From NCBI GenBank assembly GCA_047495785.1, contig JBLDXI010000020.1, positions 1,736,001 to 1,800,000 on the forward strand: 64,000 bases of DNA, written 5' to 3'. Positions 6,939-63,735 of this stretch are shown in pieces. This DNA comes from Lepidodermella squamata (taxonomy: Eukaryota > Animalia > Gastrotricha). Under the pieces are notes generated by a model that saw only the letters and a list, made by a program, of their open reading frames with translations, was not told the origin of the DNA and did no database searches. Position 1 is the first letter of the stretch, and each line of letters begins with the position of its first letter. Both the position numbers and the translations under genes were made by a program.

Positions 6939-7166
6939 CAGCGTGTCCCATAAGCTGCGCAACCATTATGTAACTTTGGAAAGGAAACTAATTTTTCTTC
7001 CATTCTTTATCCACGATTTAACCGAAGAAATTGAAAATTTACCGAAGAAAACCGTGAAAACTCTGAAGGTAACTGGTTCGGTGATTTTCGGTTTTTACAT
7101 GGTTGGATCAAATTTCTTCGAATTTTTTTTATCCCATTCACAAAAACTTACTTATGGGACACGCTG
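6939..7166. mobile_element. Tc1/mariner-type MITE (TA TSD)
   Basis: TA|CAGCGTGTCCCATAAG ... CTTATGGGACACGCTG|TA. A related partial copy at about 1723-1900 shares the left end and the internal GGTAACTGGTTCGGT. Confidence 0.8.
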
Positions 7167-7817: not shown

Positions 7818-8864
7818 GCAAACTGTATAACTATGACTCGTAAACTGAGCCCTCTGTAGCGCAACATGAGCGTCATAGGTAGACAGCTCGGTTCGGCATG
7901 ATATAATAGAAAATTGAGATTTTAAGAGTCAGAATTTTTTCTGCGGGCATGGAGCAAAGTCCACGGAAAAATGAATGCTCACACACACGCACAATGCACG
8001 CCGCCGATAAGCGCGAACTTGTCCCACTAGTAAACGGCCTTGGAACTCCAAGAATAAAGCTCAACTTTTGCGAATGGTTTCATCAGCCTGCCTAATGATG
8101 GAAAAAAAAATTGAAAATCCGAGCATTAAAAATGTGGGAGCCACATGCGGGATCGAACCCGCAAACCTTGTTTTCACGTGATAAAAAAACCATGTCAAAT
8201 AAAAGTATGAATCCTACATCGAAACGAATTGCGTCATTCGAAAGAGCGGGGTCGATTACCCCTCCTATAGCATCAGTGACAATTATAACTTTAATTTCGA
8301 TACTACGAGATTCTCAAATTTTGAAAAATACGCCTTTTCCATTTATATCTCGAAAATTCGTTTTGTGGACATAGTCGCACTAATATTCGCAATCTCAACA
8401 ACCGGGAAATTTAGGGGTGAAAGTATTCAGATCCATGAGACTTGTCAATTTTCAAGCCTCGTAATTTTTTGCTGAAATGAACAATTACTCGCAACTCGCA
8501 ACTGCACAACTGTAATTGAAAATGCCCGAGACTCTTGAAAAAAAATTAATAAAAATGTTTTGAACGCAGTATTCAAAGAGCAGGCCGCTGATGTCTAAAA
8601 TGGGCGCCTCACATGTGACCAGTTAAACGAGGCGTGAATTTAGAGGCCTCGCTATATAATGAATGTTAATATAGTGATCCAAGTGCTGTGAATGTCCGGC
8701 GTAGCTATCTCGATCCACCCACATAGTATAATGACGCCGCAAAGTCTATAGCGAGTGTCTGCAGACGGAATCCTGATAATCATTCCAATTTTCACTCAAA
8801 GTAAAGACTCATTATCCGAGGCTCCGCACATTTCAACAAAACGAAACACCGTCTAGGCACGATA

Positions 8865-9487
8865 ATGTTAGGAACTTCAAGAAATTTTATACTTCTCCTC
8901 AGCCTCTTCTCGCCATTCATCGCTCAAGGATCAGCTCTTAATGAATTCAAGAGCCGAAATCATCACCCTCCTTCAACCAAGGCACACAACAAGCTAACTA
9001 ACAAAATTACCTCAGAGAACAGAGTCTTGGCGAAAACTTTACGAATCGGCGATTCCAGCGAAGGTAGATCGAAAGCCTGGGCTCAAATAGCCCGGCAACA
9101 CAGCCGATTCCGGCCATCGGAACCTGCTGATTTCAAAATTGCAGGCCTGATCAATCCTTACGGCAAGCGATGTGGCGATGATCCGATGGCAAGGATAGGC
9201 CTTGTTTTCGGCATTCTATCACACAGGCAATGGAACCCGCACAAATCAATGACACCCGTTGAACTATTTCAACACTTGACATTATTCATGAATAGTGGTA
9301 TATTATGATTAATTTAATTTCGGGAAAAAATCAATTATTTTTTCTTTTAAATGTCCTAGATTTGGCTAAGCAAATGCTGATACATATCGAGCGACAAGCG
9401 CCCGGGCTTAGCCAACTCGTCGCCAACAGACATCGGATGTTCATCGATTGCGTCTACAAATTGTCTATAGACCCTGATTATATTTGA
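8865..9487 (+). CDS. Secreted orphan protein, CGxxP family member 5 (about 186 aa; exons 8865..9297, 9360..9487)
   Basis: Signal peptide; 62-nt phase-1 intron at the same position as in member 4; INPYGKRCGDDPMARI...DLAKQMLIHIERQAPGLSQLVANRHRMFIDCVYKLSIDPDYI*. Confidence 0.85.
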
Positions 9488-10125
9488 AAAATTCGCCACT
9501 TTCTTTGTTGAAAAAAAAATCGCAGTGATCGCATATATTTTTTCCTCAATTAAGTGTAAAAAATTAATATTAAAGCCGGACGTAATTTTCACTTTTTTCT
9601 TGAAGGTGAATGATGCATGAGTGACGGCGTTAGGTCATTGTAGGCGGTGATGATGGGCAATGTCTTTTTAGGAAGTAGCCGTCGTCGTTAAACAATATCA
9701 TCGCAGCTAGTCAAGTGAAAACAGGGACTTTGAAATGCCCATTCAGTTGTTAAAATCGAATTAGGACAGATTCCTATACATTTTCACCCTTGAGTGAATC
9801 GGTCAATCGGGTTGGAACGTGGTAATTGGTAAATCTTTGATCCAGGCCAAGTCAGTGATTTTTTTGCGTATTTATTGAGCGCATTTATACCGCCGATTTT
9901 TTTCTCACAATTATTGGATGCGTCATTTTCACTTGACTAAGCCGATCGCTTTATTAATAAAGTTAGTTAGGTATAATTATATAGGGCGAAAGAACGGAGG
10001 ACCACGCAAAATTATCCCGAGTTCTAATATAAGAGTATGCAATGAATAATAGATGGGCGTTTGAAATTTTTTATTTATTTTTTAATTGCTATTTAATATA
10101 GTGGGCCCTTTTTTATTGTGACAAA

Positions 10126-10668
10126 ATGAAGCCGGTCCTATTGACACTATTGGCCCTCGAGATGGCAGTTCTATGCAGTGCTTCGACGCGGCAGAAGGTA
10201 TTGACTGAACAACGGCTTCGAAACAATCACAAAATCGATCAAAACAGAGCAACAGTTCAGTTGCTGAATCGGCTGATGAAGGAGAAGCCAACAACACCGC
10301 CAGTTGTAACAACCCCGGCCCCAATTATTTTCGAAAATTCGCGATCGACCACTACTACAACCCCGCCACCGGTTACAACGGGTTTTTTCGTCCCAGAGGC
10401 GAAATACATCAGCCGACCGGGACATTTGTGTGGCGACGACCCAGTCGCTCGGCTTTGGGTGTTCCTTCTATTAGCCGCGAACAAACTCGGCGAGTTACCG
10501 ATGACGAACGGCCGCGTTGAAATGAACGAAGATACGATAAGTAAACTGATAACGAGCCTTCAGAAGGACAATCCATCTATGGCCATGGCTTTAACCATCC
10601 GCCGGCGCCAGTTTCTCAACTGCATGTACACCCAGGCTGTGGCTGCTGATTACATCAAGCGACGATAA
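10126..10668 (+). CDS. Secreted orphan protein, CGxxP family member 6 (180 aa, single exon) with Thr/Pro-rich linker
   Basis: Signal peptide; PTTPPVVTTP/STTTTTPPPVTT; HLCGDDPVARL...RRRQFLNCMYTQAVAADYIKRR*. Confidence 0.8.
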   Translation: MKPVLLTLLALEMAVLCSASTRQKVLTEQRLRNNHKIDQNRATVQLLNRLMKEKPTTPPVVTTPAPIIFENSRSTTTTTPPPVTTGFFVPEAKYISRPGHLCGDDPVARLWVFLLLAANKLGELPMTNGRVEMNEDTISKLITSLQKDNPSMAMALTIRRRQFLNCMYTQAVAADYIKRR

Positions 10669-11966: not shown

Positions 11967-13558
11967 ATGAAAAATTTCTTAAAATGTTTTCTGTTCCTTT
12001 TTGGAACGATCGCGGCGGTTCAATGTTGGCAGATGAGTGATGATCCGTTCCAGGACGAGCTACAACACTCGTTCAGTGCTTCACGCTTCACTGAATCTGA
12101 AGATGATCACGACGATCATGACGAACCATCCATGTTAGGAGCAGAACGTGCTCATGGTATTTAATTTTTCGAATTTTCGAAAGTCGAAATTGTGAAAATT
12201 TTCAAGGTTTATGGCTGGCCTCATCTCATGGTCACCACGCTTCATCGAACGAGGTCTTTGACCATGAAGAAAATAATGAAGAGGGCGAACACGAAGAAGT
12301 AAATTTAGCGAAAATTCGTGTTTTAAATTAAAAATTCGATTTTAGGATTCTTGGAGAGCTGATCCTAACGTACTATCGCGATTTCCTAAACTAGGCCAGG
12401 TAGCTGCGTTAGCTTTCAACAAAACCGACAAATCACTCATCGTATTTCATCGTGGATCTTCAATCTGGAACGAACAGTCAGTTTTTGGGAAAATTGTCCG
12501 TAAATTTGGAAGAAAATTCGATTTTTTTCAGCACCTTCGACGCTAATGGGACATTCCTCGGCACCAGCTCTGGTCCTATCCGTGAAGACACCATAATTTT
12601 CTATGATACTAAACGCGGTTTTGTAACGAAAAGCACCGGTAAAAACTTGTTCTACATGCCCCACGGCATGTCTATCGGGAAAAATGGCGCGCTTTGGGTG
12701 ACCGACGTCGCTTTGCATCAAGTTTTCCGCCTCGTCCCGTCCGGTAACGGCATGCGGCCTGAACTCATCCTAGGCGAAGCTTTCCAACAAGGCTCAGACG
12801 ACCGTCATTTTTGCAAGCCAACTGCCGTAGTCGAGGCGGCGAGTGATGGCTCGGTTTTCGTGGCTGATGGCTATTGCAACGCTCGAATCATGAAAATCAA
12901 CGGGAAAACTGGTGCTTTGATGGCAAAATTCGGTCGGCAGACCCCGGAATCGACCTGGATGGACGCACCTGAGCCAGGGACATTCTTCGTCCCGCATTCA
13001 CTTGCTCTTCTAGAAGGCAGCGATCTCATTTGCGTTGCCGATAGGGAAAATCGAAGGTAAAAATTAAAATTGAAATTAAATTTGAAAATTTTGAAAATTT
13101 TCGAAATTTTTTAGAATTCAATGCTTTAGCGCTGGGCTTCGAAACAACTCAGATACGGGTAGATTCATCGCCGAAATCAGCCATTCTGAATTTCGTGAAA
13201 TTTACGCCGTGAAATTTGCGAAGAAAGGTTTGATGATCCTTTTAGCTTTCGAATTTCAATGAAAATTCTGATTCCTTCGCAGCCAATGTTTTGCTGGCCT
13301 TATCCCGAGATTCCTATCAACAAGGCCCTGATACCTCCAATAAAATTTTCGCTATCGATGCTTCAACTGGACGGCCTTTCGAAGCAATCTCGATACCAGT
13401 TGGTCATTTGTTTTTTTTTTAAGAATTTTTTCAAAATATTTTCTTTGAAGGGTATGGTCAATGGTCATGATTCGGCGGTAGACGACGCGAGCGGTTTGAT
13501 AATCTACGCGTCTGAAATCGGCCCGAACCAAGTATGGCGAGTCTCTCGATCCGGTTGA
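11967..13558 (+). CDS. PAL: Monofunctional peptidyl-alpha-hydroxyglycine alpha-amidating lyase (PAL; NHL-repeat propeller), 7 exons
   Basis: Signal peptide. Spliced motifs LGQVAALA..IVFHRG..IW, FYMPHG, WVTDVALHQVF, HFCKPTAV, VADGYCNARI (catalytic Tyr), PHSLAL..ICVADRENRRIQCF (catalytic Arg), GHDSAV, EIGPNQVW. No PHM domain and no TM segment. Confidence 0.92.
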
Positions 13559-22595: not shown

Positions 22596-25500
22596 TCAGG
22601 GTTTACTCAACTGCTGAAACGCGCGCATTGGCGACGCTTGTTGCTGAAGGTGCTGCCGTAGCAGGTACATTTGATGCTCCATTTCTAGCTGTTGCTGCGA
22701 CGGCGGCGACGGGCTCGGCGGTTGCTGCTGCAGTTGAGCCGGCGGCCGTTGTAGAAACGGCGAATTCTGCGGCATCGACAAATTCAACGACGACCCGGGC
22801 CGGTCGATATTCACCGAAATCGGCGACGGCTGCGACGGCCCGGCTGTTTCCGGGGCGGGTGAAGAGCTGGTAACTTGCGAATTTGTGGTCGCCGTACTAC
22901 CCTCAATCGCCTCCGTTTTCGAGTACAACTCGCCGAGTAGGGCCGAGACGCCGAAAATTTCCGGGTGATCACGGGCGGTTTGCGACAGCACGGCGTTGTG
23001 AACGTCGGGCAGTCGCATCAGCAGGTTGTAGACGGCGTTGAACTGCGTCATGGCCTTTTGCGCGTCGTCCTCTGAGCGGCACGTTTTTTGCAGGTACGCC
23101 TCTAGGGTGCGCGTCAACCGGGTTCGCAGCTTGCCGACCGCTGTCGGGTTTTGCAGGTTCGGCACGTCCGACCGGTAGAACAGCATCGCCTCGAGGAATA
23201 CGAATTCGATGAACGACGGGTTCCAGTTTGACAACGCATCGCCGACGTCACGCACCTCTTTCGCCAGGGCCTAAAAAAATAGAAAAACGAAGTCAATTAC
23301 TCATTTTTTATTCAAAATTCATTAGTCACTTCTAAAAATATAAAACGTCTGTTGGTTAGTCGAATGTCTGAGAAAAAACATCTAAGACAGAGCGGGCGGG
23401 TGTGACTTTTGACATATTTGTCTCATTAAAAGTGAAATTTGAGATCTGCGATAGAAATGTCCAGCGAGTCCCGGTGAACGAAATTTGCACCTTCAACGCC
23501 TTTGACAGGATGTTTTCTACATCGTCGGTTCAATTCAAATAATAAAATCCCTCACATGTACGAGAAATCGTTTAGTTTAGCTCGATTTATGAACCATAAT
23601 ATTGGACACTTCGATTTTGCAACACGGGTTTTTGCATGAAATGTCCCATTTTTTGAGCATTCGAATGGTGATTGGAGCAACACTTGATTTTTCGAAATAT
23701 TTCAAGACCATATTGGGACAAAATTTAGCAAAAGCATTCCCATAGCGTTGAAAATAAAATATTCAATTATCGAGAGAAATATTCAGCAGGGCAACTCGAA
23801 TTTCAAGTGAAAATCGAGAAATTATGAGCAAAAATGAATTTCTCTCAAGTTTTTCAATTTTATAATTAATTAAAAAACATAGGATGATGTTCCCAATTTT
23901 TTTTTCTAAATTTGACCAAAGTAAGTGAAAACTGGCAAGCCAATCCGTATGCAAATGAGTTTCCCCAAAGCCGCTTATTGTCGAAATTTATGCCGGCAGA
24001 AAATGCTTCCAATCGCCGAAAATCAGGTAAAATTTGTGAATTCACCAAAATTTGCAAATAAATCGGAAACCACCTTATACACACCTTTTCCTAAAATGTC
24101 TTAGATTTCTGAATTAATACAGAATTTCTTCTCATCTAAATATACATGGTTTTGTCCGAAATTAACCTACCCTGCCATATCAAATTTGGGAGTCTAAATT
24201 TATCCATTCTATTTTCAGCGCTGAACTTTGATAAAAGCAAAAAAAGCACTTGCGCAAAATGGCAGGCGGCTTAAGCGATGTTAATGGGTACGTATGGACT
24301 CAGTAAAGCCATTAAAATTTAAAAAGCCCCTCAAAACGATTTATAGTGAGTTTTTTTATAAATCCATCAATCGATTTCTGGGGGTCCACACATTAAAACT
24401 CGAGCGATTTTCAGTTATATCGGAACAAAGCATCGCCCATTCAGTAGATAACACCCACAAGTTTAATAAAAAGTCACTTCTAAAGCGGACTGTTAATTTT
24501 AGGTCAATATTTAAAATAAATGTCCATCTGAAAGCTGCTCTCAGCTCGAGTAAGGCGAAAATATATCGATTGAACCCAACATAAAACTTGAAAATCAACA
24601 GCTAAGAACTTATGAAACCCATTTTACAAATCAATGATTTAAATGGTATGAAAAACCGTTAGGAGGATTAACTTATTAATTCGGAATAAAATCATTGAAA
24701 AAATAATTAATTAAATTAAATGGTCTGAATTGCCTTATAGGGATCCGTCTAATCAGATTATTTTTGATAAAATTCAGCATGGATAACCTCTTACGCTTAC
24801 TACTTACTCACTCCTAAATATAAGGACGAACAAAATTTGACGGAGCTTAACAGGTTCAAAAATCTAGGTTTAATTTTCAGGTGATTTTGGACTGTATAAC
24901 TCCGAACTATTTTCTCAGTTAATAAAATCCAGTAGACGCTGTTAATTTTCTTCAAAATTCAAAATTCCAAGTTCCGAGGCGAATCCGGAATCTTACGAGA
25001 CAAATGAGCATCGAAATTACAGGCCCAAATTCAGGAATAAAACTGTAAATATTAGGTAAAAATGGAATTTGTTTGGAATTTTGAAAACGGAAAACTTTGA
25101 AGTTAGAACCGTCAAGAAATGGGTTGACCTGTTACCGGAACAAAATTTTCAAATTTTATTTGGGCCTGAAACCACTTTTTCAGAACTTCAAAAGATGTTG
25201 TTATCATAGATCATAGCAATTTCAAATAAATTATTATTATCGGACTTTAGAAATCATACGCTGCCCCAAATTCAAATAATTTTTCGAAAACCAACATTTG
25301 CCACATTTTGAGTTCGGATCCGCTACAGAAAATTTAGTTCAACCTTGAAAATATGGTTCTGTCCATAGTTATAATAGCCCTAAAACTCTCTGACTGGAAA
25401 ATTTGACGAATTATTATGACATTTTCATCCTCTTTTTTTAACCTGATTTTAAGTTTAAAAAAACCAACAAACCGTGTAAGCCGGGAAATAGGACAAGAAA

Positions 25501-28500
25501 AGACTGCGCGCTTCTTGCGTCATGTTGAGGAAAAAGCCGTCGGGCCGGTTCGGCGGCGCGTCGAGCAGCTGTTGAGCAGCAGCCATGGGCAGGAACGAGT
25601 CCGAGAAAATATCCGACCGATCCTTCAAATTAATCTGCCTCACGCCCGGCAGCGCCTTCACGTACGACAGCCCCATACCGACGCCGTCCTCGAAATTCGC
25701 CATCAGTGATTGCCACAACTGCGCCGGCGACGGCGTTGGCTGCGCCGCGTTCAGCGAAAATTCCAACTGCTTCGACGAGAATTGCAATGAAGGGAACGCG
25801 CGAACAATGCCGCGTAGCATCGCCTCGTTCGCCATACCCTCCAAATTCGGCGGCTCGCTCACCAACATCGGCATACGTTGTACCTGCTGTTGGCCGTCCA
25901 TCGGCGAGTCGTCATCGTTTTTATCCTGCTGCGAAGATGACCCGGCCTGGTCATTGGCGGTTTTATTACCGTCTCGCAGCAACGCCGTCGCGAAAAACGT
26001 CCAATGCGGCGAGTTCGGCTGGCTGCTCGACGACGGCGACGTCACGTTAGTCGCCATGAACGAACTGGCAGACGTCGGCGGCAGGAACCCGGCCCCGAAC
26101 GGCGGCGAGTTGCCATTCGGCGACGGGATGTTAGTCATACTCGCGTTTCGCACCTGCAAATCCCTCGCAAATTTTTGGTAGGTTAAAAACCCGTTTAGGA
26201 CATTGTTGTTGTTGTTATTCTGCCGTTGTTGCTCTTCCGGCGAGCCACTTCGCGTTAAATTCATCGCACTCTGGCCGAATCGGAAGGTTTCCGGGTTCGG
26301 GAAAACCGGTAAATTTCTCTGCGGCATCGCGAAAGGCGACGGCGCTAATTGCTGTTGTTGTTGCTGAGCTGGTGGCGATGGCGAGGCGAACCACGGCGGT
26401 GATATCGAGTCGCTGGCGGCGGCGGCGGTGAACGGCGAGTGCGGGCGGCCGTTGACGCCGATGGTTGCGCGGTGTTTTTTCGGAATGTACAGGTCCATGG
26501 TGGGGTCTGATAGGGACGGCGCGCCGACGCTTTGAGGCGGCGGGACTGATGATAGCGACGCGTGTTCTTGTTTCATCATCGACGAAACACTGAGCGGCGA
26601 GGCTATGCTACTGAAAGCACCGGGCGAAGCGGCAATACTGGCGGCACCGGCTGTAGAAGTCGATGTTTTGGTCTTCTTTCCTAAAAAAAAACAAGAAAAT
26701 CGAATTAATGAACTTTTTCAAATCAATTCCTCTCGATAAAATAGTTAAACGAACTCGCATTGTGCAATTATTATAGAAAAATCGGAAAAAACTTGAGTAA
26801 AAACTTTACGAAAATTCCACCTTAAAAATTATTTTTCAAATATTTGGACTTCCCGCGACTTGAAACTTTAATTTTCAAATTATTTTCAATCGGAGCACCC
26901 GGTTCCCTAAGGTCTAATGTCTTCCGGACTAGCATTGGATAGCCCGAGAACTCCTTTATAATTCTGTATTTGCGATCGAAATTATCGAATATTTTCGAAA
27001 ATTTCACTTGGGTGGCAAAGTAGAGAAAACCCAAAAACTGGCCGAATTTAGAGTGATGTGCTCTACGGAATTTGCACAATGAGTTGTCAGTTTTTATTGG
27101 GTTAAATTGAAACAAATTTTGAGCAGATGGCGCATCATCTGTTTTCCGAAGAAATTGGGAGAAATAACACATTTTGCACAGCTGAATTTCTTAGAAAAGT
27201 CCAGAATTAGCTGACTTTCACCTGAACTTCAGGTGAATGCCCTGTAAATACCAATCATCATTTCTTCATTTTTCTTTCGATAACTGAGAGAGCAACGCTC
27301 TTAGGATACCCTTGCCAATTTTCGTCTCAAAATGATCTTTTGTTGGGTGTCCCAAATCGACATTTCAGTCGCCTTGCTTATAACATTTCTTAAAAATCAA
27401 GCATTGCTTCAATCACCTTGGGGCTTGCGCCATTCGAAAGCTCAAGAGTCAGGGAATTTTATGCAACAAACCATGTTTTTTTATCAAAAATTCAGATTGC
27501 CTTTTTTGAATTCCGAAAGTTGAAGAAATTTACAAAAAATCCGTTATCGGTGGAATTAATAGTTTCGATAATCGACTTCACCTGCCATAACAACTTGAAC
27601 ATGTTTTCCCTTTGCATAGACTAGTTGAAATACAGGGATCTGTTTTTTTCAAAAAAATCTTAAAATCCCACCTTAAACAATAAGCTCATCCAACTTGTTG
27701 GCCCTTTTTTATTTACACTGCCTCTTCTTTTCTCGTCGCGTCTAACAATTCAATTTAGAGCCTATCGATTGACTTTTCATCAAATTGCTTCTATAAATTG
27801 CGTTCCAATTTTGCAGTTTTTGCACATTAAAATCACATTCCTCGATGAATTTTTAATTAGCGCATTCTCGCCTTGAAACAAGAGATGCATGTGATAAATG
27901 AATTTATCGATTCAGCAGTAATTTCCCTCCCTTCGCAAACGTGACATTACTCATACGGCTAATATTGGCATTTTTTATAGGTTTTAATGTGTATAGGGCG
28001 CAACACTCTACCTACGCATGATTTCGCAGCGGAAATTTAACATAAAAATTCCAAAGAGAACAAGAAAAATAATACCTTTCATTCGCATCCCGAGTTCGAG
28101 ACATTTGATAATACGGCAGCGCGAACAGCACCGGTTATTAGGCGTAATTTCACAGATTTGCTGCGGCACCTGGCCATCGCCTGTCGACGTCGATGCTGCC
28201 GAAGCAAGTGGCGGCATAGAGGCGTGATTCGACTCGTTTACGCATCGCAATTTCGGTAGAGAATTGCGATTTCTGATGAAAAATTTCTAGAAGAAAAAAT
28301 CGGGTAATTAAGATCCGTTTTTCGGAAAATTTAATTTCGACCCCCACGTAAAAAAGTGTACCTATTGAAATGACCACTTTTTATCCCGAGTAGGCGTGAC
28401 AGTCTCACATTTCAAAACATACCTTGCATGCTTCGCAAACGACGGCGCCACAACGACGTCCGACCGCTGACGATCCGCATACTTTGCAGTTAATTCTTTG

Positions 28501-37100: not shown

Positions 37101-40100
37101 TCGGCGGAATAAAACGTGAAAAGAAGTTTGGCAAGTTTTTTTCTGTGCTCATTGACCTCATTTTCTCGTATTTTTTCCGCGTGCGTTTTCTGGAACAATC
37201 GAGTAATTGTATCATCTCTCCATTCATAAACAGGATTGTGTGTTTTTCACTTAGATAGCCGGACTTCTTGAAGGCAACAAATAAAACCTGTTCAATCATA
37301 AGCAGAGATAGCGAAGCATAACGTATGCGTGATGTTTTATTTCAGCCTCACAGCTTTGAGATTGCCCTGTATAAAACTGTAATAAGGAAATTATCGATGC
37401 GGTTTTCAATCAGTCAATAGGTATAGAGTTTCTTTGGAAAGCAGTCAAAACGAAAATTCTGATTAATATAAGTAAAATCACAAAATTTCATTAATTGCTG
37501 TTGTCACTTTTCAACTTTCAGAAAAATTTAACGCACTCTATATAGACCTAGTTTTATCGATTGCTGAAAAACGCATCGATAATTTCCGCCTTACAGTAGT
37601 AGGGTAATCGTAAAATGGCGAGGCGAATAAAACATTGCGCATGCTTTAGTCTGTCATTCACTATTCGACGAACCATGCAGCATGCGCAGCTGATACGACT
37701 TGTCAAATTGTCATTTTTCGGTCATTTTTTGCCGTTGCTTGGACCAACACGCCTGCCATTCTATGGCTCATTTTTTTCGGCCTGCATCGTGAGCAGATAA
37801 TTATAAGAAATACAGAATTGGAATCAATGGCGTGCACACAGGTTTTTTTTATGGATTTGTTTCATTTTTACGAATTTTGCTTGTTAGTTTTACTCATTTT
37901 TTCAATTACGGAGTAGATAGGAGCGTTGAATTTTCGATATGAATTATCCTAAAAAAATCGTGAAAATACTTGGAGTGAATGAAGTTTATAAGAAGAATAC
38001 AATGAAAAATCTCAATAATTTTATAAGATGATGCCTTGTGAATACCTAGCTTTTGATGTCTGCGCTGGGCCTGGTGAATGGTCATTATAGATGATCGCGG
38101 CCTTGTAGTTCTAGAAAATTGACGATCTGATTGTGTTTCTTTTGTTTTTTCGTTGGGGAGGTTTTCGCCTAATAAAAATGGCGATTGAGGCGCAAGTTAT
38201 CAGCAATTTTAGAATATATTGAAGCTGTAAAACTGAACTGAAAAGAAAGCTGAGCTGGCGAAATCATCGTGTTATGATTCTAGAAAATTTGTCTTGTTAT
38301 AATAATTTTGTTGAGTCATAGCTGAGGATAGAAGGAACAGCTTGTGTGACGGAATTTCTTTCCGTAGTTCAGTCGTTATCGGACCCGAATCAGGCCGAAT
38401 GGTGTCGCGGAAATAATAGCAAACTGCTTTAAACCGGACTTGCGTTGAATCGGGCCGAATTTTACTGAATTATTAGGAAATGCGAATTGTTGTTTGTTTG
38501 CTTGGAAAGCAACTCATACGCTGGATATCTGAAATATCGAATTTTCAACTTTAACGATAGGGATTATATAGGGAAAGCGTACGAGTGAGCTGAAAAACGT
38601 CTATAGAGGGTCTATTATTTGTTTTGAGTTGAACAAGTCTATAAGTTTGGCTAAATTGTTTGCTGTGGGCTTTTGCGGAACCTGGCATAATAGCATTTCA
38701 TAAATCGTCAAATGCAATTATTGGCCTTGAATATCTTCGAGAAATAATAACTAAATCGAACTTGATCGCGCTTAATTAATGATTATAAGCCCTATCATGT
38801 GGTATCATGTTAAGCCTGAGGGGTGAAATTGTAGTGTAACGACTAATTTCATCCGAAAACCGAAAACCGACGTGAAATTAATCTCGGTGCCAAGTTTGAT
38901 TCAAAGCGAAAAGGTAAGAAAAGTAAGACTAGTAGGAATAGGACAACAATAGGAAGGAATGGGCTTTTCATTCCCCTGGTGTTATCGAAGCCTATGCAAG
39001 GAATCAATTTCACTAGTGTGCATTAATTTTCGAGCTTATTTGCCCTCCTGTACTTACCGGAACCAGATTTGCTATTGCGGAACCAAATGCGACGATGAAA
39101 TGAACGATTCATCGAAAATTAATTAACGAATTTTTCACAATTTCGAGGTTGAAATTTTAGTGGCCCGAGCGGCTATTCTAGTTACGTTCCGCAACTCAAA
39201 TTCGATTCCGCTACAGCTCTTTGAGGGGGTTTTCCTCTAGCCCTTTTATTTGCCAGGGTTTTTCTCTTTTTCAGTGGATATTTTCGACAGAATATCTTTT
39301 AGCGGAACCTAATTTGCTGTAGCGGAACCAAATATGCTGTAATGGGACCAAATTTGCATTTTGCGGAACCAAAGCCAAAATATGCCCAAAGTCATTTCGT
39401 AAATAATTCTAGGAATTTCAGGCGATGCATTAGTTTTGAATTGAACACTCTTGTCTTATAGAGAATTACGGATGATTTTTCTGTAGAATTATTGTAGTCA
39501 ATCTTGACCCGCAAGAAATATCCGAAACGTGATTTCAGGCAACTAGAAAAATCCAAAATTTGGTTCCGGTGGTAAGGAGGGCCCTATTTTCGACATTGAT
39601 CTTAGGGCCAAGACCAAATAGCGTAATTCAAGATTTGGTCATCCTTTGTGTTCACATTTTCACGTAACTCCGCAACTATAAGGACTTTTTGATGGGATTT
39701 ACAGCTATTGATAAGTCGTGAGCGCGGTTAAATTTGCTGTAAGTATCGTAGAAAAGGATTAAAGCGGAAATAGCGGCAGCTAAAATGCGTTTGGCGATTC
39801 TAGACTCTAAACGAAATAATGGTAAACCGCGCCGATTTTCGGCAACTTAGGTATCGCTTTGACAACTCGCTCCAAAGGCTAGGGGCGTCCAATACTTGAG
39901 CGCGAACAGGTTTGTGATCGGAACGAGCCGACATTTAATCCAGCTTATTCCACGCTATTCCTTGATTGACATGCGTAAACTTCTCAATTTGGAAGAAATA
40001 GCCCCAAAAGAGCGGATCGAATGGAGACAACACGCTACAAACGACGTTTACTCCAGAACAAATCGAAATTATTGCTAATTAATGTGTGAAATTATTTGAA

Positions 40101-41188: not shown

Positions 41189-44100
41189 TAGACTTTGGCA
41201 TGATCGCACATCGCACTAATATGCGAGCTTTTAATAGTTTTAGGTCGTGCAACTTTTTCACCGTGCGCAGAGTTAAATGCGACCCTCGGAATATCCAAAA
41301 CAATGTTAATCTTCGCATGAAAGCAACAATTTATTCGATAGCAATAAATTAACAGAATATCTTTTAGCGGAACCAAATTTGCCTGTTGCGGAACCAAATC
41401 GGCATTTTGCGGAACCTTAGGTAAGCGAAAGGCTGCTTTCTGAATATTTCTACGAAATTGAGGCAATGCATGAATTCTATAGTGAAGACTGCATCTTTTA
41501 CAGAATTTTACGCTGAATTTAATGATGATTTATTTCAAATTATGCTGATAAATCATGACAAGCTTGAAAGCCTCAAAAAGTGGCTTTAGGACTATTGAAA
41601 ATTCCAGAATTTGGTTCCGCTACAGTAAAATTTGGTTCCGTTAAAAGTAAGACCCATAAATTTATTTAAAAGTTATTTATAAGTTATTGTACAGAAGCAC
41701 GCGCCATCTATCATAGCCGTCATCGGAATGTAAGAGGCAGCATTAACTTTCTGAAATTTCGAAAAGCCACATCACAAGCTCACCCGTTTTCATCGCAACT
41801 TCGAGTAAAATAAGGCGAATGAATCAGATTCAAGAGTTCGTTCTCTATTCTCGACACGTTTCCGTTTCACTCATAGATACGAGAATATCTTTTACAGGAA
41901 CCAAATTTGTAGCAGAACCAAATTTGCAGTTTACGGAACCAAGGTAGAAATATCCCAAGAGTTATTTTTTGAATAGTTCTACGACTTCTGGCAAATAATG
42001 AGTTCTGGATTGAACACTCTGTCTTATAGAGAATTTTACCCTGAATTTACTGGTGATTTATTTAGAATTATTGTCGTCAATCTTATTGTGGTCAATCGAC
42101 CCGCAAGAAATATCTGAAAAGTGATTTCAAGCCATTAGAAAATTCCAAAATTTGTTTCCGCTACAGCATATTTGGTTCCGCTAACACCGTAAATTTGGAT
42201 CCGGTAAAAGGAGGACCCCATAGAAACAATGCAAAAAGGCAAATTGTATGTACGGTCTCCTAGATCCTAGAATAATCAGCCCTCGTGAGTGAAGCAGGAC
42301 TTAACTGACGCGGTTTTTTCTATTGTTGCACGGGAAATGTCTAAAGAGGTTTCGAAATTTCCCGAATTGGGGCCCTCGCCTACAACGCCAGCAGATTACT
42401 GCTATTAGAATGGATGTGTGTTCCGACGATGTTATGCTGATGAAATAGTCGCGTTTTACGATGAAATAAATCAAAACAAGTCATTCCGATGGAATAATTC
42501 ACTTTTCTAGCAATTTTTGTATTTCCGACGCTTCAAGTCAAAATGGTACGAAAAAATAAAATAAAAATTCGATGAAATTAGCTGAGTCCGTTTTTTCCAC
42601 TTCTCGCTACCCAGGTGAAATTTTAGAAAATATTTGGAAAATACAGAATTATAGAAGAATTCTCGGGTTATCGAATGCCGGTTTCCGCAAGTCCGGACGA
42701 TTTTACCTTGATTTATGGCTAATTTAGGGATCCGAGTGCCCAAATTTCGGCCTCTTCATCCAGTTAAGCTAATTCCACATTATCCCTTGGATTAACTTGG
42801 CGAAACATTCTCAATTAGAGGAATTTTGATTCAAAAGAAGGGATCTAAAGAAGCAAACACACTCTAACGACCTCTATTCCAGAGTTTTCCAAAATAATCG
42901 CCAAGTAATCGCGAATTTGTGTGAAATTAGGGGTCTTTCTATCACCGGAACCGAATTTACAGTGAGCGGAACTTAATTTGCTTTAGCAGAACCAAATATG
43001 CGCTGTAACAGAACCAAATTGTGTAATTTCCTAGTGTCCTGATATCACTTTTCGGATGTTTCTTGGGTCTCGGAGTTGACCGCAATAATTCAGCAAAATA
43101 ATTCACCAGCAAATTCAGCGTAATATTCTCTATAAGACAGAGTGTGCAATTCGGAACTCATGCCTCGCCACAAATTCGTGGAATTATTCAAAATTGAGTC
43201 TTGGCTTATTTCGTCCAAGGTTCCGCAAAATGCAAATTTGGTCCCGCTAGAATATATATATTTTGAATCATTTTCGTCAATTTTTAAGGGATAAATCGAC
43301 AATTTTGGGGTCAGATCTGCACCCAGTCCGGACTGTGTCATAATAAATGTGCTTTAAAATGAGCAAATTGAGTGAAATATTCAGAAAAAGCTGCGATGGA
43401 TCACCGATGATTCGCCGTAAAAATTGCGCAACAGCTGGCGTTCCGATCTAGCGCATAGTCAATATTGCTAATTTAATGCTAATGTGTTTAGAAATTACCC
43501 TCGTGGCGCGGCCTACTGGCCCAGCAAGGTTAGCGCGACCTATTATACGGCTCAGATCTCCACAAAGCGCACCTTTATTAATAAATTTTCTAGTGTCGAT
43601 TACAGTAGTTTTAGTAATCACGTGTAATCAGGGATATGTAGATTTTTGAATTATAATGAATCGCAATGATCGTGTTTTTAGGCAAATATGATGAAAAATT
43701 GGAGGCTTATAGCTACCGAATTTTGAATCAGAATATCTTTTAGCGGAACCCAATTTGCTGTAGCGGAACCAAATTTGCTTTTTGTGGAACCAAAGTCGAA
43801 ATATGCTTAGTGTCATTTTTCTAATAATTCTTCGAATTTTAGGCTAAGCATGCATTCTAAATTAAACACTCTGTCTCTGTCTCTGTAATTTTTGTAGTAA
43901 TTTTGACCCACAAGAAGTATCCTAAAAGCGATTTCAGGCCACTAGAAAATTCCGAAATTTGGTTCCGCTACAGCATTTTTGGTTCCGATGCAGCAAATTT
44001 GGTTCCACTAAAAGGAGGACCCATTTTCAATAGCGGAGAAGTTGAGATTAGCCAAGTTTTGGGGGGGGGGGGGGTAGCCTCGAAACGAGCAACAACAATA

Positions 44101-50677: not shown

Positions 50678-52583
50678 TTAAACTTCGTCAATTCGATTCT
50701 TAATTAGGGTATTTTGGTGTGAGGAGCAGGCTTTGAAGTATTTTTATTAAATTTTTCTAATTTCAAGGCATATGTAAGCATCCTTCATGTTTGAAACCGG
50801 AACATTTTTGTAGTTGTTGCAACTGGTACATGGCGTAAAGTACAAATTCCTAAATTCGGCCGGTGCGGCGTAACTTCGACTATGCTGCAGTTTTTTTGCA
50901 CGCAAATATGCATTGTTGAGCCAATCTGTTTCACGGTTTTTCAAGCGCGTGATCGCTAAAAATTAATTCCTAATGCGGGCTCGTGTCGTTTTCTCAAGTG
51001 CTTTGTTACCTGAGGTTCAAGCATCACCTCGTCAATGAAAAACTCCAGATAAATCAGCAAAGTCGATTTCCTATCTCAACTTGTTAACGGTACCAAACTT
51101 GAGCGTATAACTGGATGAGGTGGCCGAAATTGGGGCACTCCGCTCTCAAATTCCGGCCGGGTGTCAAGGTGACTAGAAAATTCGCCAAAAATCAGGTAAA
51201 ATCGTCCGGACTTGTGAGAACTGGCATTCGATAGCTCGAGAACCCCTCTATAATTCTGTATGTGCCGATTTCTTTCCTAAAAATTCACCTACCTGGCAAA
51301 GTAGGAAAAACCCAAAAGAAACAATTTTAATTGGGTTTTCCTTTTAGCGAAACCAAATTTTGGAATTTTCTAGTGGCCTGAAATCACTTTTCGGATATTT
51401 TTTGCGGGTCAAGATTGACCACAACAAAAATTCTACAAAAACCACCAGTAAATTCTTCGTAACATTCTCTATAAGATGGAGTGTTCAATTTAGAATCCAT
51501 GCTTCGCGTAAAATTCGTAGAATTATTCAAAAATGACACTTGGTATATTTCGATTTTGGTTCCGCTACAGCAAATTTGGTTCCGCTAAAAGATATTCTGA
51601 TTTTAATTTCACTTTTGCTTTGCTATTGGTAATTTGTTTTCTGTTAGCCTCTTTTTATTAACAGGAACACTTTTTCACTCTCGTTGTTGAAATTTAAAAG
51701 TTAAAATTGAAATTTTTATTGTTGAGCCCAAGGCGTCCTTGAAGTCATGGAAAATCATCATTAAGTGAATAAAAGCTAAATCCAGAAATTAAATCCAGAA
51801 ATTAATTCTGAGTTTTGATAGTCAATATTGACCTGCTGAGGCTGATTCGTCAAAATCCTACACTTGAGCTCCAATTAAATCAAAAATTTAATTATCATTT
51901 CCGGGATCAATTTTTATCTTACTGAGATGACTCTGCGCGTTCGTTCAACGCCGAAATCACGGCCTGCTTATAATCTCTTTAATGTCCCAAAATGTTTGAA
52001 TAGACATTTCGAAATAATACAAAATTGAAGTAGTGATATCCGTTCTTTAATTGGTCGCTGTTGAGCTGATTCAATAATGCACATAAGCCGAAAATCACCA
52101 GCAGTAATAGTACGAGGTTTTGCGAGGCAAGGTGTCATGTTTCTTCAATGCAATGACAGTTTCTGGGTTCTATCGCAGCCAGCAGCAGCAGTTTATGTAG
52201 CGTAATATCAGGCGTGCTAATGCTGTCATGTAGAAATCGATTGATTTTATCGGAAAAGTGTGCATTGTTTATAAAAACACATACACGATGTAAGTACAAA
52301 TGAAACCGAGTTGTGAACTTTTCATTTACTACAGAGACTTATTAAGGATGCCCTGTATTAGTTCTACAATTTTAATCAGGCTCACGTTTCCTCAGTCACA
52401 GACTTTCAGACGGGCGCAGTTTTATTAGGCCTATCCGTCGAGGGTTATACTTTATTTCATTTAACCAGTTGAGTTTTGTCAATTATGATTGAACTTGACA
52501 CACCGTTTTCACTTGTCTGAATGTTAAAACTTTACCTGATAGGCGAATGTTATTTCGAATGATTTAGACTGCTTTTATTCACC

Positions 52584-57888: not shown

Positions 57889-58257
57889 TCATAGAGCTAC
57901 GGGCCTCTGACGTAATTTGTTGATCGCCTCGATGATAGTTTTATCGTCGACCTCAGCACTGAGATCATCGATTTCATCGCTGCCTTCTTCAGCGCGTAAT
58001 AAATCGATGATTTGCTGCTGCGATTCGGGTGATAATTGGTCGAATTCACCGATGTCAGCCTCGTCGAACAGCTCATCTCCCAATTCGTCCTCGTCGCTGT
58101 ACGACAGCAATTCGTTGAAAAACGCGTCTTCCAACTCGGGCCGAGTCAATTTCGACAAGTCAGCCGCCGCTTCGTCGACCTGCTTACCGCTGATTTCCTC
58201 AGCTGCCGCGATGGAGGCAACAAAAATGGCGGCGAAAATTACGAAAAACTTGTTCAT
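57889..58257 (-). CDS. Secreted highly acidic small protein (122 aa)
   Basis: Clear signal peptide MNKFFVIFAAIFVASIAAA; D/E-rich body; C-terminal TIIEAINKLR similar to TIIEALNERY of its neighbour. Confidence 0.8.
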   Translation of the reverse strand: MNKFFVIFAAIFVASIAAAEEISGKQVDEAAADLSKLTRPELEDAFFNELLSYSDEDELGDELFDEADIGEFDQLSPESQQQIIDLLRAEEGSDEIDDLSAEVDDKTIIEAINKLRQRPVAL

Positions 58258-58293
58258 TATTTTATTTATTCTAAAAATCTTAAGGTAGAATTT

Positions 58294-58626
58294 TTATTTA
58301 TAAAGTTTATAGCGTTCGTTGAGTGCTTCTATAATAGTGATTGGTTTAGAGCCTGGCTGATAAAAAGTTTTGTCCTTATTGCTACCAAATCGCAGGAGTA
58401 AACGTTCGAAAGCATCGCGAGTCCGCTGCTGGTTCTTTTTATTGGGACGGGGCGGTGATGACGAGCCAGTTCGCCGCTCCACACTTGCGTAGATTTCGGC
58501 CGATGACGCTATTGCCGCTTGATCCGGCAGATTTACCACGGTGGCGGGCTCCGCAGGGCACGTGCACGAAGATGCGACGGCTAAAGCCGTGGCGAGTAGG
58601 AATGCCGACGCTGTAATTGACACCAT
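58294..58626 (-). CDS. Secreted peptide-precursor-like protein (110 aa) with LLLRFG motif
   Basis: Signal peptide; basic sites (RR, KK); FERLLLRFGSNK; ends TIIEALNERYKLYK*. Confidence 0.75.
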   Translation of the reverse strand: MVSITASAFLLATALAVASSCTCPAEPATVVNLPDQAAIASSAEIYASVERRTGSSSPPRPNKKNQQRTRDAFERLLLRFGSNKDKTFYQPGSKPITIIEALNERYKLYK

Positions 58627-58946
58627 GAAGAATAATTTGAAAATAATTATATTATCGCGATCAAACGATTTAGAGACGAATAATAAATTTTTCGAATTTC
58701 TATTTTTATTATTATTTATTTTGTTTTATAACGTCACTCGTCCTCATGCGGAGCGGATATCCCTGCCGTGATGAAATATTTGCCAATGTGACCTGGATGT
58801 GTCAATTCAAGTCCGGTCAGGGCGATATTATAGGCAATAAAAAGAAATCTAGGCCACGCATTTTACGATGACACACAAAGCGTAGGCCTCGCCAGGGAAA
58901 TAATGAAAATAATTTATAAAAATTGCAGGAATGAATTGTTATAATT

Positions 58947-59420
58947 TCAGCGTCCGAACAATGAGTAACGTTGACCAAGCAGTTGCTTGACAGCCTCTTT
59001 GTTGCCGCCCTCTGACAAGGCTGATGATCCGGGTTTTGGCATGTTGATAAGCCTGTACAGCCTATTGATGACCGCGTCTTCGCTAACAGCGCTCTTCTTG
59101 ATCGTTTTCTCTTTTTCGACATGTTTCTCCTGTTCATCTGGTTTCAAGTGATGACTGCCAGAGCGGAGGTACACAATTCGCCGGTTTTGCTCAGCCGGCG
59201 CGGCGGCTAGAATTTCGTGAAAGCTCCGCGGGGTGTAGGCCTCGTTAGACATCAAAATTTCATTAGCGTCGTTGTCGAAAAGGTCGATTGCTCGCCGGTA
59301 TCTCGCTAGTGATGCCCCGTGCGACAGGTGTGACAGTGAAGAGACGGTGAAGAAAATCATGAGCCAGAAAGCTGAAATCAGCCGGCAGCTTTCTTTCGCG
59401 TCAAAACCCAACATGGCCAT
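58947..59420 (-). CDS. Secreted peptide precursor ending in -QRYSLF-GR (amidation signal)
   Basis: Signal peptide, furin-type RYRR site, internal VYLRSG, C-terminal G-R-stop. Confidence 0.8.
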   Translation of the reverse strand: MAMLGFDAKESCRLISAFWLMIFFTVSSLSHLSHGASLARYRRAIDLFDNDANEILMSNEAYTPRSFHEILAAAPAEQNRRIVYLRSGSHHLKPDEQEKHVEKEKTIKKSAVSEDAVINRLYRLINMPKPGSSALSEGGNKEAVKQLLGQRYSLFGR

Positions 59421-60274
59421 CACTGATAGCTAAAAGTTTAACAAGGTAGGTATCTAAATCAGGGAATGACAACGAATTATTCTATATAATCCCGAAAAAA
59501 TCAGCGGAGGCGTGGCTTAAAAGGTCATTTTTCCTCACAAATTACAAATCGCCTATGAAAGAGAGCAACGATCATTGATAACAGAATTCATGTGTAGTGT
59601 GACAGTGTGACCTTCGATTACCACTGATGAGTTTTAGAAGCGTCTGTTATAGTATCTATTTTTAGATTTTTCAAAATTATAGACAAACAACGTCTTACCT
59701 GCTATGACGTATTTTAATCAAAGATACTTACGGGGATATGATTGCGGATTTTTTCCCCCACTCCAGTGGATAAATTTACCGCGAAGATTTAGCTCTAAAG
59801 CTAATGGAGTAAAATCAATAAAATCTTTAATTTTTAACAAGCTGCATTTCGAAGAATATTTTCGTCAAATATTTACAGTAGGAAAGAGGACTGAAAAGTC
59901 TGCTAACGAAAGGAAAACAGAATTTTCGCGTTTTGGACATGAATTTTCATTCGTTATGAAGCCCCTAGCAGCCTGTTTTAATACATTCACGTGATTCAAA
60001 CTCTTTTCAGAGTAGGCGAGAGGTCAAATCAAAGTTCGTGAATTATTAAAATAAATCGAAAAATCCGTGTTTCACCTGCTGTAAAGCGGAAGCGTGGTTC
60101 CAATCGAAAACGACTCACGGCACTAATGGCTCTATTTATCGCTAAAAATGATTCATGATTTTCTACACCAACGAACAATTTTTATTTTTAAAATTTTTGC
60201 ACCAGGTTTTCCACTGGACATGATTATAAATAATATGGTATTTTAGTCGCGCATTATTCCTCGTGTTGTCGAAT

Positions 60275-60673
60275 TCATATTTTATACGATCGACCACCCT
60301 TGCTCATCGCAAGAGCCGAGCGCCATCGATGAACCGGCTCAGCCAGGCGTGGAATAAAGGGTGCTTGATCTCGCTCTTCATTCAGCTTAATTTCGCCCGA
60401 ATTTTCAAGAGCAGACGATTCGGTGGGCGATTCAGGGGTCATAATTGCCTCGCCAGGCTTCACGCGATTATTCAAAAATTTCGATGGCGTATAAACGGGT
60501 TTCGCGAATGAAATTGCCAGTGATTCGTCGTCCGCCGAATTTTCATCGCCGTAAAAATCGAATTTACCATCTCGGGTCTGGTGATCGGCAGCGTAATTGA
60601 AAATTGAAGCCATGTCCTGGGCTAAATTCGGCGCAATTATTGCGGCGAAAAAGATGACAATACTGAGATTCAT
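60275..60673 (-). CDS. Secreted peptide-precursor-like protein (132 aa), divergent member of the right-hand cluster
   Basis: Signal peptide MNLSIVIFFAAIIAPNLA; KPVYTPSKF motif shared with neighbours; TATATAAAGGGG about 55 nt upstream. Confidence 0.75.
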   Translation of the reverse strand: MNLSIVIFFAAIIAPNLAQDMASIFNYAADHQTRDGKFDFYGDENSADDESLAISFAKPVYTPSKFLNNRVKPGEAIMTPESPTESSALENSGEIKLNEERDQAPFIPRLAEPVHRWRSALAMSKGGRSYKI

Positions 60674-61156
60674 GATAAGCGAAAAATTATTTCAACTAAA
60701 ATTAACTAAAATTTAACAGCCCCTTTATATAACGATCAAAACAAAAACAAGGTAATCAAAACCGCGATTTATTAAAAAAAAAAATAGAGTGGATTAGGAT
60801 TCGGCGCACGTGGTTCATGGCCTGGACGATGTTTACTTGCGGTCCGCGGTGATAATTATGAGAGAAATTTTTAATCACCTTTCGGTCATATGGACAGGCC
60901 TACTTAAGAGTCCCAGATGCAATCTTGATGACGTTTTACTGGTACGGATTCCGGATGCAATTTTTAGGGAGTGTTAATTTCCTTGTCGGGTATATTAGCT
61001 GCTGTTTTTAAGAAAAATGCAGCCGTTAAAAATTCTTGAATACAATATTAAGTAGGGCAACAATTAAGCAGACCTCCCACGTTCCAATTTTATTAATTCC
61101 CACTCAAACACATAATTTCAATTGATGAAATTGCGAGGTTGAAAAAAGACAATTAT

Positions 61157-61513
61157 TCACCCGAAAACAGCCCAGGTGCGACTCATCAATTTCTTAACGT
61201 CATTCGGGTCGATTTCAATGTCATTTTTCGAGATGGGCCTCTTCAGCTTGAGTTCGATCTTTTTATTAGCTGCGTCATTGATCGATTTCGGCGATACCGC
61301 TGCTCCAAATCGAAGATAGGAAGAAATTGGTTTATCCGCCGATTTTACTTCTTTGAATCTTGATGGCGTGATAATAGGCGGTTGATTTGGGTCCATAGCC
61401 AAATTTTCTGAACTGGCAGGATCGCCATGAATTTCGATAACAATCGCTGGTTGTTGGCCAAAGAATTGAGGAAATTGATAAAATAAAACGATCAAGCAAT
61501 AAAAATTGTTCAT
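61157..61513 (-). CDS. Secreted AVF-G family precursor 1 (118 aa)
   Basis: Hydrophobic N-terminus; IITPSRF; SSYLRFG; ends DVKKLMSRTWAVFG*. Confidence 0.8.
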   Translation of the reverse strand: MNNFYCLIVLFYQFPQFFGQQPAIVIEIHGDPASSENLAMDPNQPPIITPSRFKEVKSADKPISSYLRFGAAVSPKSINDAANKKIELKLKRPISKNDIEIDPNDVKKLMSRTWAVFG

Positions 61514-61642
61514 TATTCTCCATAAAAATTGAATTTTTTTATTTCTCTGCTTTTATTTGAGTCGCGTGAGACCGCCATTCATTTATCGAGGATTTTTACA
61601 AATTATTTTATACACGCAAAATAAAAATAAAATTGCTGATTT

Positions 61643-62050
61643 TTAGCCGAAAACTGCGAAAGTACGACGAGCGGCTTTTTTCAACTCTTCATCGTTTGAA
61701 GATTTTCGGTTTTTCGCTTTTTTCAATAGCGACTGGTCCTGGATCAGAGTCTCTAGAATCTTCTTAAAAGCGTCCTCCTGAGATTTTTCCTTGTTATTGT
61801 CGTATGGCTTTGTTGTTACGAAATTGCCGTGCCGAAGCAGGGCTGGTTTTCTGCCTTCAGCCGCGGCTTTTGATCTTGAGGGTGATACAACTCTGTCTTG
61901 TTTAGGTTTGATTAAATAGTCGCCTCGGTCGAAGAATCCATCCTCCAAGGAATCACTCGGTAGTTCCAAGTAAAGAGGAATTTGTTCTGAAAATTCAACA
62001 AAAAATCCCAGCAGCAAGATAGCCGAAATGCTCACGAATTTGAATATCAT
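61643..62050 (-). CDS. Secreted AVF-G family precursor 2 (135 aa)
   Basis: Signal peptide; GFFDRGDYLIKPK; VVSPSR; ALLRHG; ends ELKKAARRTFAVFG*. Confidence 0.85.
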   Translation of the reverse strand: MIFKFVSISAILLLGFFVEFSEQIPLYLELPSDSLEDGFFDRGDYLIKPKQDRVVSPSRSKAAAEGRKPALLRHGNFVTTKPYDNNKEKSQEDAFKKILETLIQDQSLLKKAKNRKSSNDEELKKAARRTFAVFG

Positions 62051-63339
62051 TCTGTATAAAAATTATTGGAAATCTACCGAAAAAAAATAAAAAATGAGTT
62101 GCATAAATATACGACGAAAATTGGTGTTTTCGAGTCTAATTTTAGTCGGGGAGCTTAACTGCATTAATCCGAGGTGGCTTAATCATCGCTTAAAAACCTC
62201 AGAATAATTGCCTTCTTGAAATGGCTGTCGTCATCAGAAAAGCTTATATGAGTCGACAAATCACATTTTTGCCCGAATATCAACAGGAATAATTGGACAT
62301 TGGCGTAGCCGCAGTGACGCAAAAGGGAGAAAAACATTTCAAGTAAAAGATTTTCGTTCATCCCGATATAATCGACAAAAATCACGGCTTTGATCATCTG
62401 AATAGATGATGGGCCGTTATTTGATGAAATTCATATAAGATGAACGACTCTCAATATCGCAATTGAGTACGATGCTTACTATTTGTTATTCGGTGATGGA
62501 GAAAGTGATCGATAAGGATATAAGTGCCATGAGCAATAGAAACAGGTTCGAATATGAAGTGGCCGTGATGTTGAAGTAGCTTTTAAAACACGACATTTTC
62601 CTCTTAATTCAACGGAAGAATGAACGTTTGTTATGCGTTCAAAATCGGCTATATTTATCAGAGGGGGAGGAGGGGGTTCCAATTTCATCATGTGGCAAAC
62701 TCAGATTTCTCCAGTAAACTTCCTATAAAAATAGGGTCCCAATAGATTAAGCGGAAACGATTCTTCTATAAATGAAAGATAAACTTTTTGAACCTGGAGT
62801 TTTTACACGGGCCCTAAGCTATTTCGAACAAATTATTGATGTTTAGGCTCCAAAACGGTTAATATATCTGAAAATCACTGATTTGTAAAATCGATATTGA
62901 CTCTGCACTCACTCCTAAACTAGCCAAAAATCGATCATTTGAAATCAATTCAGCGAGCGCGGGAAATCCTATGTCCATTTGGTACTAGCATAAGGCATGA
63001 TAGCATTAAAAATTTAGATTCTAATGATGACATGAAACTTGAAAACCCTTATTTTGGGGAAGTCTAGTGCCAGAGTCCCAAATTTAGTGCTGGAACCCTG
63101 AGTTTAGGGTGCCCACTTGGCAAAACCAAATTGCAAGTTCCCGTAAAAGAGGCCGATCAAGATACCGATAAGCAATGTAGTAGCCAGCCTTCATAATTTA
63201 TTTCCAATCGATTGCCACAAAATTGCCAGACTTCGAGCTATATTTGGCACACCGAGTTGCAACAATTTATTTTTCAACAATAAAAAATGGAAATGTTATG
63301 TACAATTAATGACGTATTAGAAGCAATAAAAAGGTTACG

Positions 63340-63735
63340 CTAGCCGAATACAGCGAATCTGTGGCTGGTCAGTTCCTTGAGATTCTTCTCCATTACAGCG
63401 GGCTTCTTAGCATTTCCAGAGGGCGAATTAGAGTCTGCCGATAATAGCTGCTCTATAGCAGCAGATACCAACTCTTCCTTAGCTTGTTTGGGGTTCGATG
63501 GATGAGGATTCTTTCGGTCCTTTTGCTTGCCTTTGTTCTGAAATCGCAAAGGTGAAAAAATGGCCGTCGGTTTTGGGCTGATTAGCAATTCGCCGCGGTC
63601 TAAAAACCCGGATGACTCATGCGATTGATCATTGACGCTACGCTGTGCTAATTCAATAGCTGGCATTTGCAGTGTAAAATCGAACAGCACCACGCCAAAA
63701 ACACCTATCACCACGATATTTGGCAAGCAGTTCAT
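63340..63735 (-). CDS. Secreted AVF-G family precursor 3 (131 aa)
   Basis: Signal peptide; GFLDRGELLISPKP; IFSPLRF; ends NLKELTSHRFAVFG*. Confidence 0.85.
   Translation of the reverse strand: MNCLPNIVVIGVFGVVLFDFTLQMPAIELAQRSVNDQSHESSGFLDRGELLISPKPTAIFSPLRFQNKGKQKDRKNPHPSNPKQAKEELVSAAIEQLLSADSNSPSGNAKKPAVMEKNLKELTSHRFAVFG

Follow-up and report, generated by a model that had tools for sequence, protein, structure and literature searches.

Seven small open reading frames (ORFs), here designated g1 to g7, are arranged in tandem on the minus strand at positions 57889-63735 of a 64,000-nucleotide stretch of the genome of the gastrotrich Lepidodermella squamata (contig JBLDXI010000020.1, positions 1,736,001 to 1,800,000), which is hereafter termed the window. 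Their sequences indicate that the array harbors a genuine orphan family, probably a functional one, whose small secreted precursors end in a C-terminal motif of the amidation type. As to the nature of the products, we favor, with somewhat better than even confidence, the interpretation that the genes encode lineage-specific small secreted prepropeptides, and that the C-terminal stretch of the core members becomes an amidated, most likely signalling peptide.

Paralogy within the array

An initial annotation, made from the sequence alone, had described the array as intronless precursors sharing an aromatic C-terminal motif. All seven ORFs (110-158 amino acids) run uninterrupted from ATG to stop, and the quoted C-termini (SRTWAVFG, RRTFAVFG, HRFAVFG, QRYSLFGR, and ERYKLYK) as well as the quoted internal motifs (IITPSRF, VVSPSRS, IFSPLRF, VYTPSKF, GFFDRGDYLI, and GFLDRGELLI) were all recovered. 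Moreover, every ORF except g5, where the stretch is weaker and shorter, contains in its first 30 residues a hydrophobic 10-residue window with a Kyte-Doolittle value of at least 2.2, from which we infer cleavable signal peptides.

Judged by full-length blastp matches (E-values of 2e-11 for g6 versus g7 and 1.6e-7 for g5 versus g6), g5, g6, and g7 are clear paralogs, with 25-28% identity between core pairs. The relationship of g3 is more distant: it matches g7 with an E-value of 0.006 and is the best non-member match of a hidden Markov model (HMM) built from g5-g7, with an E-value of 0.46. It joins the core through its tail, which ends in RYSLFGR, and two internal motifs. When scored against the three core tails, the g3 tail reached 26.7; the 53,198 other 14-mers obtained by translating the window in all six frames scored 20.7 at most. 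The tandem paralog family proposed initially stands for g3 and g5-g7, albeit as a strongly diverged one, with g1, g2, and g4 as possible members, for which neither pairwise blastp comparison nor the HMM revealed significant similarity to the core.

These three ORFs are tied to the core by short motifs only. The TP-motif yielded six matches in the 75,541 six-frame residues of the window, five of which fall in g3-g7 at nearly the same ORF position. The sequence LLRFG in g2 corresponds to YLRFG in g5, LLRHG in g6, and YLRSG in g3, and the tail of g2 ranks 18th of 742 in the tail scan. Lastly, g1 has an 8-residue segment near its end, TIIEA[IL]N[KE], in common with g2, and nothing else. The family proper is taken here to comprise g3 and g5-g7, with g1, g2, and g4 as possible, strongly diverged, tail-less relatives.

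As a separate observation, the internal YLRFG, LLRFG, LLRHG, and YLRSG sequences resemble an RF-amide signal, and a basic residue never follows. This xLR[FHS]G motif may be left over from an earlier processing site, or the resemblance may be fortuitous.

Conservation of the C-terminal tail

There are five matches to the strict tail motif [FWY][AS][VLI]FG[KR]0-2-stop in the window, all of them on the minus strand, as compared to a mean of 0.04 in 50 shuffled sequences. Four of the matches belong to g3, g5, g6, and g7, and the fifth is the candidate g8 described below. When g3 and g5-g7 are aligned, conservation peaks in the final ten columns, where the sum-of-pairs score is 1.78, as compared to ~1.0 in the next best block. 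The conserved unit comprises ~13-14 residues in the order hydrophobic, Lys, x, Leu/Ala, x, x, Arg/His/Gln, Arg/Thr, aromatic, Ala/Ser, Val/Leu, Phe, Gly. All five genes share the terminal Gly, which directly precedes the stop codon in g5, g6, g7, and g8 and is followed by Arg and the stop codon in g3. The earlier proposal that selection acts on the last 6-7 residues was hence correct as to the location of the best conserved block and too narrow as to its length.

Within the last 7 codons, the residues are largely kept while the codons differ synonymously, and the synonymous divergence (dS) exceeds 1 or is not computable in four of six pairs, which means that synonymous sites are saturated in this comparison. 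Since the residues persist at saturated synonymous sites, the copies must be old, and selection rather than recent copying maintains the tail, in agreement with the selection that the initial annotation had anticipated for this segment.

A candidate mini-gene outside the array

The tail scan also located g8, 19 kb from the array. Its predicted product starts with Met-Lys-Ser and a hydrophobic run of 18 residues, which leads into a tail ending in LISRRFSVFG; with a score of 26.3, this tail lies above all 53,198 other 14-mers in the window. We therefore regard g8 as a likely further family member outside the array coordinates, that is, as a candidate rather than a proven gene. If real, it would be informative, as it retains the signal peptide and the tail alone; a search for the other family blocks in its vicinity found none. 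The pyrimidine-rich sequence that encodes the hydrophobic run could alternatively be the end of an intron.

In the same region we observed a short dispersed repeat that flanks g8. The 20-nucleotide unit TTGGTTCCGCTACAGCAAAT is present in 13 copies with at most 3 mismatches between positions 25314 and 51595 of the window, as compared to 0.09 expected. The copies are found on both strands and often as adjacent pairs, examples being located at 39067-39086, 39312-39331, 43753-43772, and 51556-51575.

Predicted processing and amidation

C-terminal amidation involves trimming by a carboxypeptidase, followed by the successive action of PHM and the peptidyl-alpha-hydroxyglycine alpha-amidating lyase PAL, so that Gly-stop and Gly-Arg-stop are handled as equivalent. 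The occurrence of both endings at the same position of the tail is what this pathway predicts. The equivalence fits amidation, and we see no other simple reason for it. In addition, an exon encoding a PAL domain is present at 12452-13060 on the plus strand (E-value of 1.2e-50 against rat PAL), ~45 kb from the array. As read from this domain exon, the organism possesses the amidating machinery.

With regard to the N-terminus of the putative peptides, one alignment column holds a dibasic site in three of the four core members, namely KK in g6, KR in g5, and KK in g3, and cleavage at this position is predicted to yield amidated products of 37, 27, and 44 residues, respectively, the first of these corresponding to the helical end of g6. 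Moreover, tail-proximal KK or RR sites in g5 and g6 would release peptides of 5-9 residues. However, these proximal sites are not aligned with basic pairs in g7 and g3 and are thus not a feature of the family. The mature product is therefore probably longer than a short tail peptide, with 27-46 residues, and generated from the shared upstream basic site. We infer that each gene gives rise to a single amidated peptide, long and partly helical, which is perhaps cut further in some members. The AlphaFold 2 model of g6 has a pLDDT of 55 and is mostly disordered, with a signal helix, C-terminal helices at residues 86-109 and 120-134, and no fold. Such a foldless model of low confidence is more in keeping with a propeptide than with a globular protein.

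Taken together, these data suggest the following scheme. The products would enter the secretory pathway via the N-terminal signal peptide and adopt no globular fold. The functional product would be the extreme C-terminal stretch in g5, g6, g7, g3, and probably g8, the N-terminus of which would be set by prohormone convertases. Of the four full-length members with a tail, three have a basic site in common, where a cut would generate the partly helical peptides of 27-44 residues; a cut at the member-specific KK or RR would generate those of 5-9 residues. Through the action of PHM and PAL, the terminal Gly, or Gly-Arg once trimmed by a carboxypeptidase, would give rise to a C-terminal amide, resulting in mature ends of the type R/T-[F/W/Y]-[A/S]-[V/L]-Phe-NH2. 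As suggested by this precursor architecture, the products would then most likely act as signalling peptides, either as neuropeptides or as hormones.

Alternative explanations

Several observations weigh against this scheme. The signal peptides were called by a simple hydrophobicity rule alone, which is a heuristic. The ending in Gly or Gly-Arg that the initial annotation had ascribed to the precursors holds for g3, g5, g6, and g7; in three of the seven array genes (g1, g2, and g4) the terminal Gly is absent. The tail is not the sole constrained part, given that the TPSRF-like motif, xLR[FHS]G, and GF[FL]DRG are conserved as well. No basic site preceding the tail is common to all members: at the shared column, a dibasic site is missing from g7, which has only a Lys-x-x-Lys slightly upstream, and the counterparts of the tail-proximal KK of g5 and g6 are KE and KQ in g7 and g3. 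As to g8, we saw neither a TATA box nor an AATAAA signal adjoining it, and it sits among copies of the dispersed repeat.

Some of these points would also be expected if the ORFs encode small secreted, largely disordered proteins that function as a whole, for example as gland or adhesive proteins or as constituents of the cuticle or the egg envelope. The C-terminal helix and the aromatic tail would then form a motif for binding or docking, without the Gly acting as an amidation signal. Conserved blocks spread over the length of the protein, a cleavage site before the tail that is not universal among the members, and the three array genes without Gly are all in line with such a function. However, this explanation leaves the equivalence of Gly-stop and Gly-Arg-stop unaccounted for, and it sits poorly with a tail that directly abuts the stop codon in each of five genes, with the retention of signal peptide and tail alone in g8, and with the lack of a fold in the model of g6. 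We consider it unlikely, although it is the most serious of the alternatives.

Considerably less probable is that the ORFs encode precursors of amidated host-defence peptides of an antimicrobial or toxin-like kind. Such families likewise form fast-evolving tandem arrays in which the signal and processing parts are conserved, and the array described here diverges very fast outside the tail. Moreover, hydrophobic ends are common among amidated defence peptides such as the clavanins. However, it is the mature part that is usually variable in defence families, whereas here it is conserved, and the tails are not significantly amphipathic (the fraction of shuffled sequences in the comparison of hydrophobic moments is 0.13-0.78) and carry a net charge of just +1 to +3. 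An amphipathic helix of the defence type, which we had considered for the tail, is unsupported, as the hydrophobic moment does not exceed that of the shuffled sequences.

Lastly, that the ORFs are non-functional, being chance ORFs or decaying pseudogene copies, would agree with the lack of homologs in any of the databases searched and is nevertheless very improbable, considering seven intact ORFs with signal-like starts on one strand, protein conservation that persists at saturated synonymous divergence, a more than 100-fold enrichment of the tail motif over chance, and TATA-like and AATAAA sequences flanking most of the genes.

Searches for homologs

Searches of Pfam with all seven proteins returned noise below the threshold, and likewise the C-terminal peptides had no Pfam match beyond noise at E-values up to 10. 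A profile search of the PDB with the C-terminal peptides retrieved designed helical (repeat) proteins only. No match was obtained with g6 in a word-indexed protein set or with a profile of g3, g5, g6, and g7 against 1.84 billion representative proteins, and two metagenome scans, one with g6 and one with g7, revealed no relatives. Exact-protein look-ups of g1, g4, g5, g6, and g7 and of two other ORFs of the window found nothing on record. As this failure includes two unrelated ORFs, the genome is probably absent from the collections searched. Literature searches found neither FAVF- or AVF-amide peptides nor a neuropeptide survey of gastrotrichs. As Pfam, the PDB, the profile search, and the literature revealed no described family with this ending, the initial remark that no neuropeptide family ending in [FW]AVF-amide was recognized is supported.

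Organization of the array and other features of the window

The positions and characteristics of the ORFs are compiled in Table 1. A TATA-like box is present 45-105 nucleotides upstream of most of g1-g7, and an AATAAA sequence follows the stop codon within ~110 nucleotides (69 nucleotides in g7), except for g3, where the distance is 227 nucleotides. Judging from these flanks, each ORF of the array appears to be a small gene of its own, with a coding region free of introns.

Table 1. ORFs of the array and the candidate mini-gene g8 (positions refer to the window).
ORF	Positions	Strand	Characteristics
g7	63340..63735	-	intronless 131-aa predicted prepropeptide ORF; signal-like N-terminus, GFLDRGELLI, IFSPLRF, tail ...LKELTSHRFAVFG-stop
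g6	61643..62050	-	intronless 135-aa predicted prepropeptide ORF; GFFDRGDYLI, VVSPSRS, LLRHG, tail ...LKKAARRTFAVFG-stop
g5	61157..61513	-	intronless 118-aa predicted prepropeptide ORF; IITPSRF, YLRFG, KR site, tail ...VKKLMSRTWAVFG-stop
g4	60275..60673	-	132-aa putatively secreted ORF, possible diverged member; VYTPSKF at family position; ends ...GGRSYKI
g3	58947..59420 (from ATG; ORF list 58947..59423)	-	157-aa predicted prepropeptide ORF; AYTPRSF, YLRSG, tail ...VKQLLGQRYSLFGR-stop (Gly-Arg variant)
g2	58294..58626	-	110-aa putatively secreted ORF, possible diverged member; internal LLRFG; Gly-less tail ...IIEALNERYKLYK
g1	57889..58257	-	122-aa acidic, putatively secreted ORF; ends ...RQRPVAL
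g8	38849..38971	-	candidate 40-aa mini-precursor; hydrophobic signal-like segment directly followed by ...LAPRLISRRFSVFG-stop

The start of g1 is located just 36 nucleotides past the stop codon of g2. This gap (58258-58293, minus strand) contains two overlapping AATAAA sequences and an acceptor-like TTTTTAG site right before the ATG of g1, and a T-rich AG is likewise found within ~25 nucleotides upstream of the ATG in g3, g4, g6, and g7. On sequence grounds, the short gap and the T-rich AG sites look like spliced-leader or operon-type processing. A search for a promoter motif shared across the array genes returned A/T-rich words only, and a GCGTG core, initially considered as a shared element, was dropped, since it is inconsistent across the genes. 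An Rfam search of the window gave no match.

Outside the array, a second run of approximately six small ORFs with signal-like N-termini is present on the plus strand at 3108-10668 (starts at 3108, 4042, 5007, 6189, 8865, and 10126). Two of these were searched against Pfam, without a match. The region around the PAL exon is rich in genes for small secreted proteins, and a possible signal-peptide exon of the PAL gene was observed at 11967-12164. On the minus strand, an exon at 22596-23255 encodes the ligand-binding domain of a nuclear hormone receptor (Pfam PF00104, E-value of 2.3e-7), and a long Gln-rich ORF upstream of it on the same strand (25455-26579) probably belongs to the same gene.

Implications

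If the products are indeed amidated peptides, the array extends the peptide repertoire of a poorly studied phylum by a family for which no relatives are detectable and, in that case, provides concrete sequences for mass spectrometry and for receptor pairing. In addition, it illustrates the evolution of precursors of the one-gene-one-peptide type: the signal peptide and the amidated end are retained, and all other parts diverge or, as in g8, are lost. The kind of gene as such is familiar, and the surprise for a specialist is thus moderate. A more far-reaching version, which we put forward tentatively and with some doubt, would be a new signalling-peptide family in an unexplored phylum, with one long helical aromatic-A/S-V/L-Phe-amide per gene, g8 reduced to the active end only, and an island of peptide-hormone genes beside PAL.

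Comparison with known peptide families

Precursors of the CRF, DH44, and egg-laying hormone type comprise a signal peptide, a long and poorly conserved spacer, a basic site, and a terminal helical peptide of ~30-45 residues, followed by Gly or by Gly and a basic residue. Among the known systems, CRF/DH44-type precursors are the nearest in layout, as three of the four core members would yield products of 27-44 residues. However, the CRF profile of Pfam was not matched, and a tail of the form R-x-aromatic-A/S-V/L-F is not a CRF-type ending. Calcitonin/DH31 gave no match in Pfam or the PDB either, and whereas members of that family end in Gly-Pro-amide, the array tails end in Phe-Gly instead of Pro-Gly.

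With respect to short peptides, the Mytilus inhibitory peptides, or PxFV-amides (written PXVFamide in PMC4200219), are amidated and have hydrophobic or aromatic ends with V and F, and the SALMFamides of echinoderms end in LxF- or FxF-amide (PMC3594158). Both resemble the array tails in their amidated hydrophobic or aromatic endings, amidation being predicted in the case of the array. However, PxFV-amides and SALMFamides are present in many short copies per precursor and contain a fixed Pro or Ser, whereas the array genes encode one tail each. Moreover, the tails are in a different register, with an aromatic residue at -4 and a basic residue at -5/-6. They also differ from the cationic amphipathic amidated defence peptides in their low net charge and in a hydrophobic moment no higher than that of shuffled sequences. 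In conclusion, the array probably represents a new family that is lineage-specific, although its kind is familiar.

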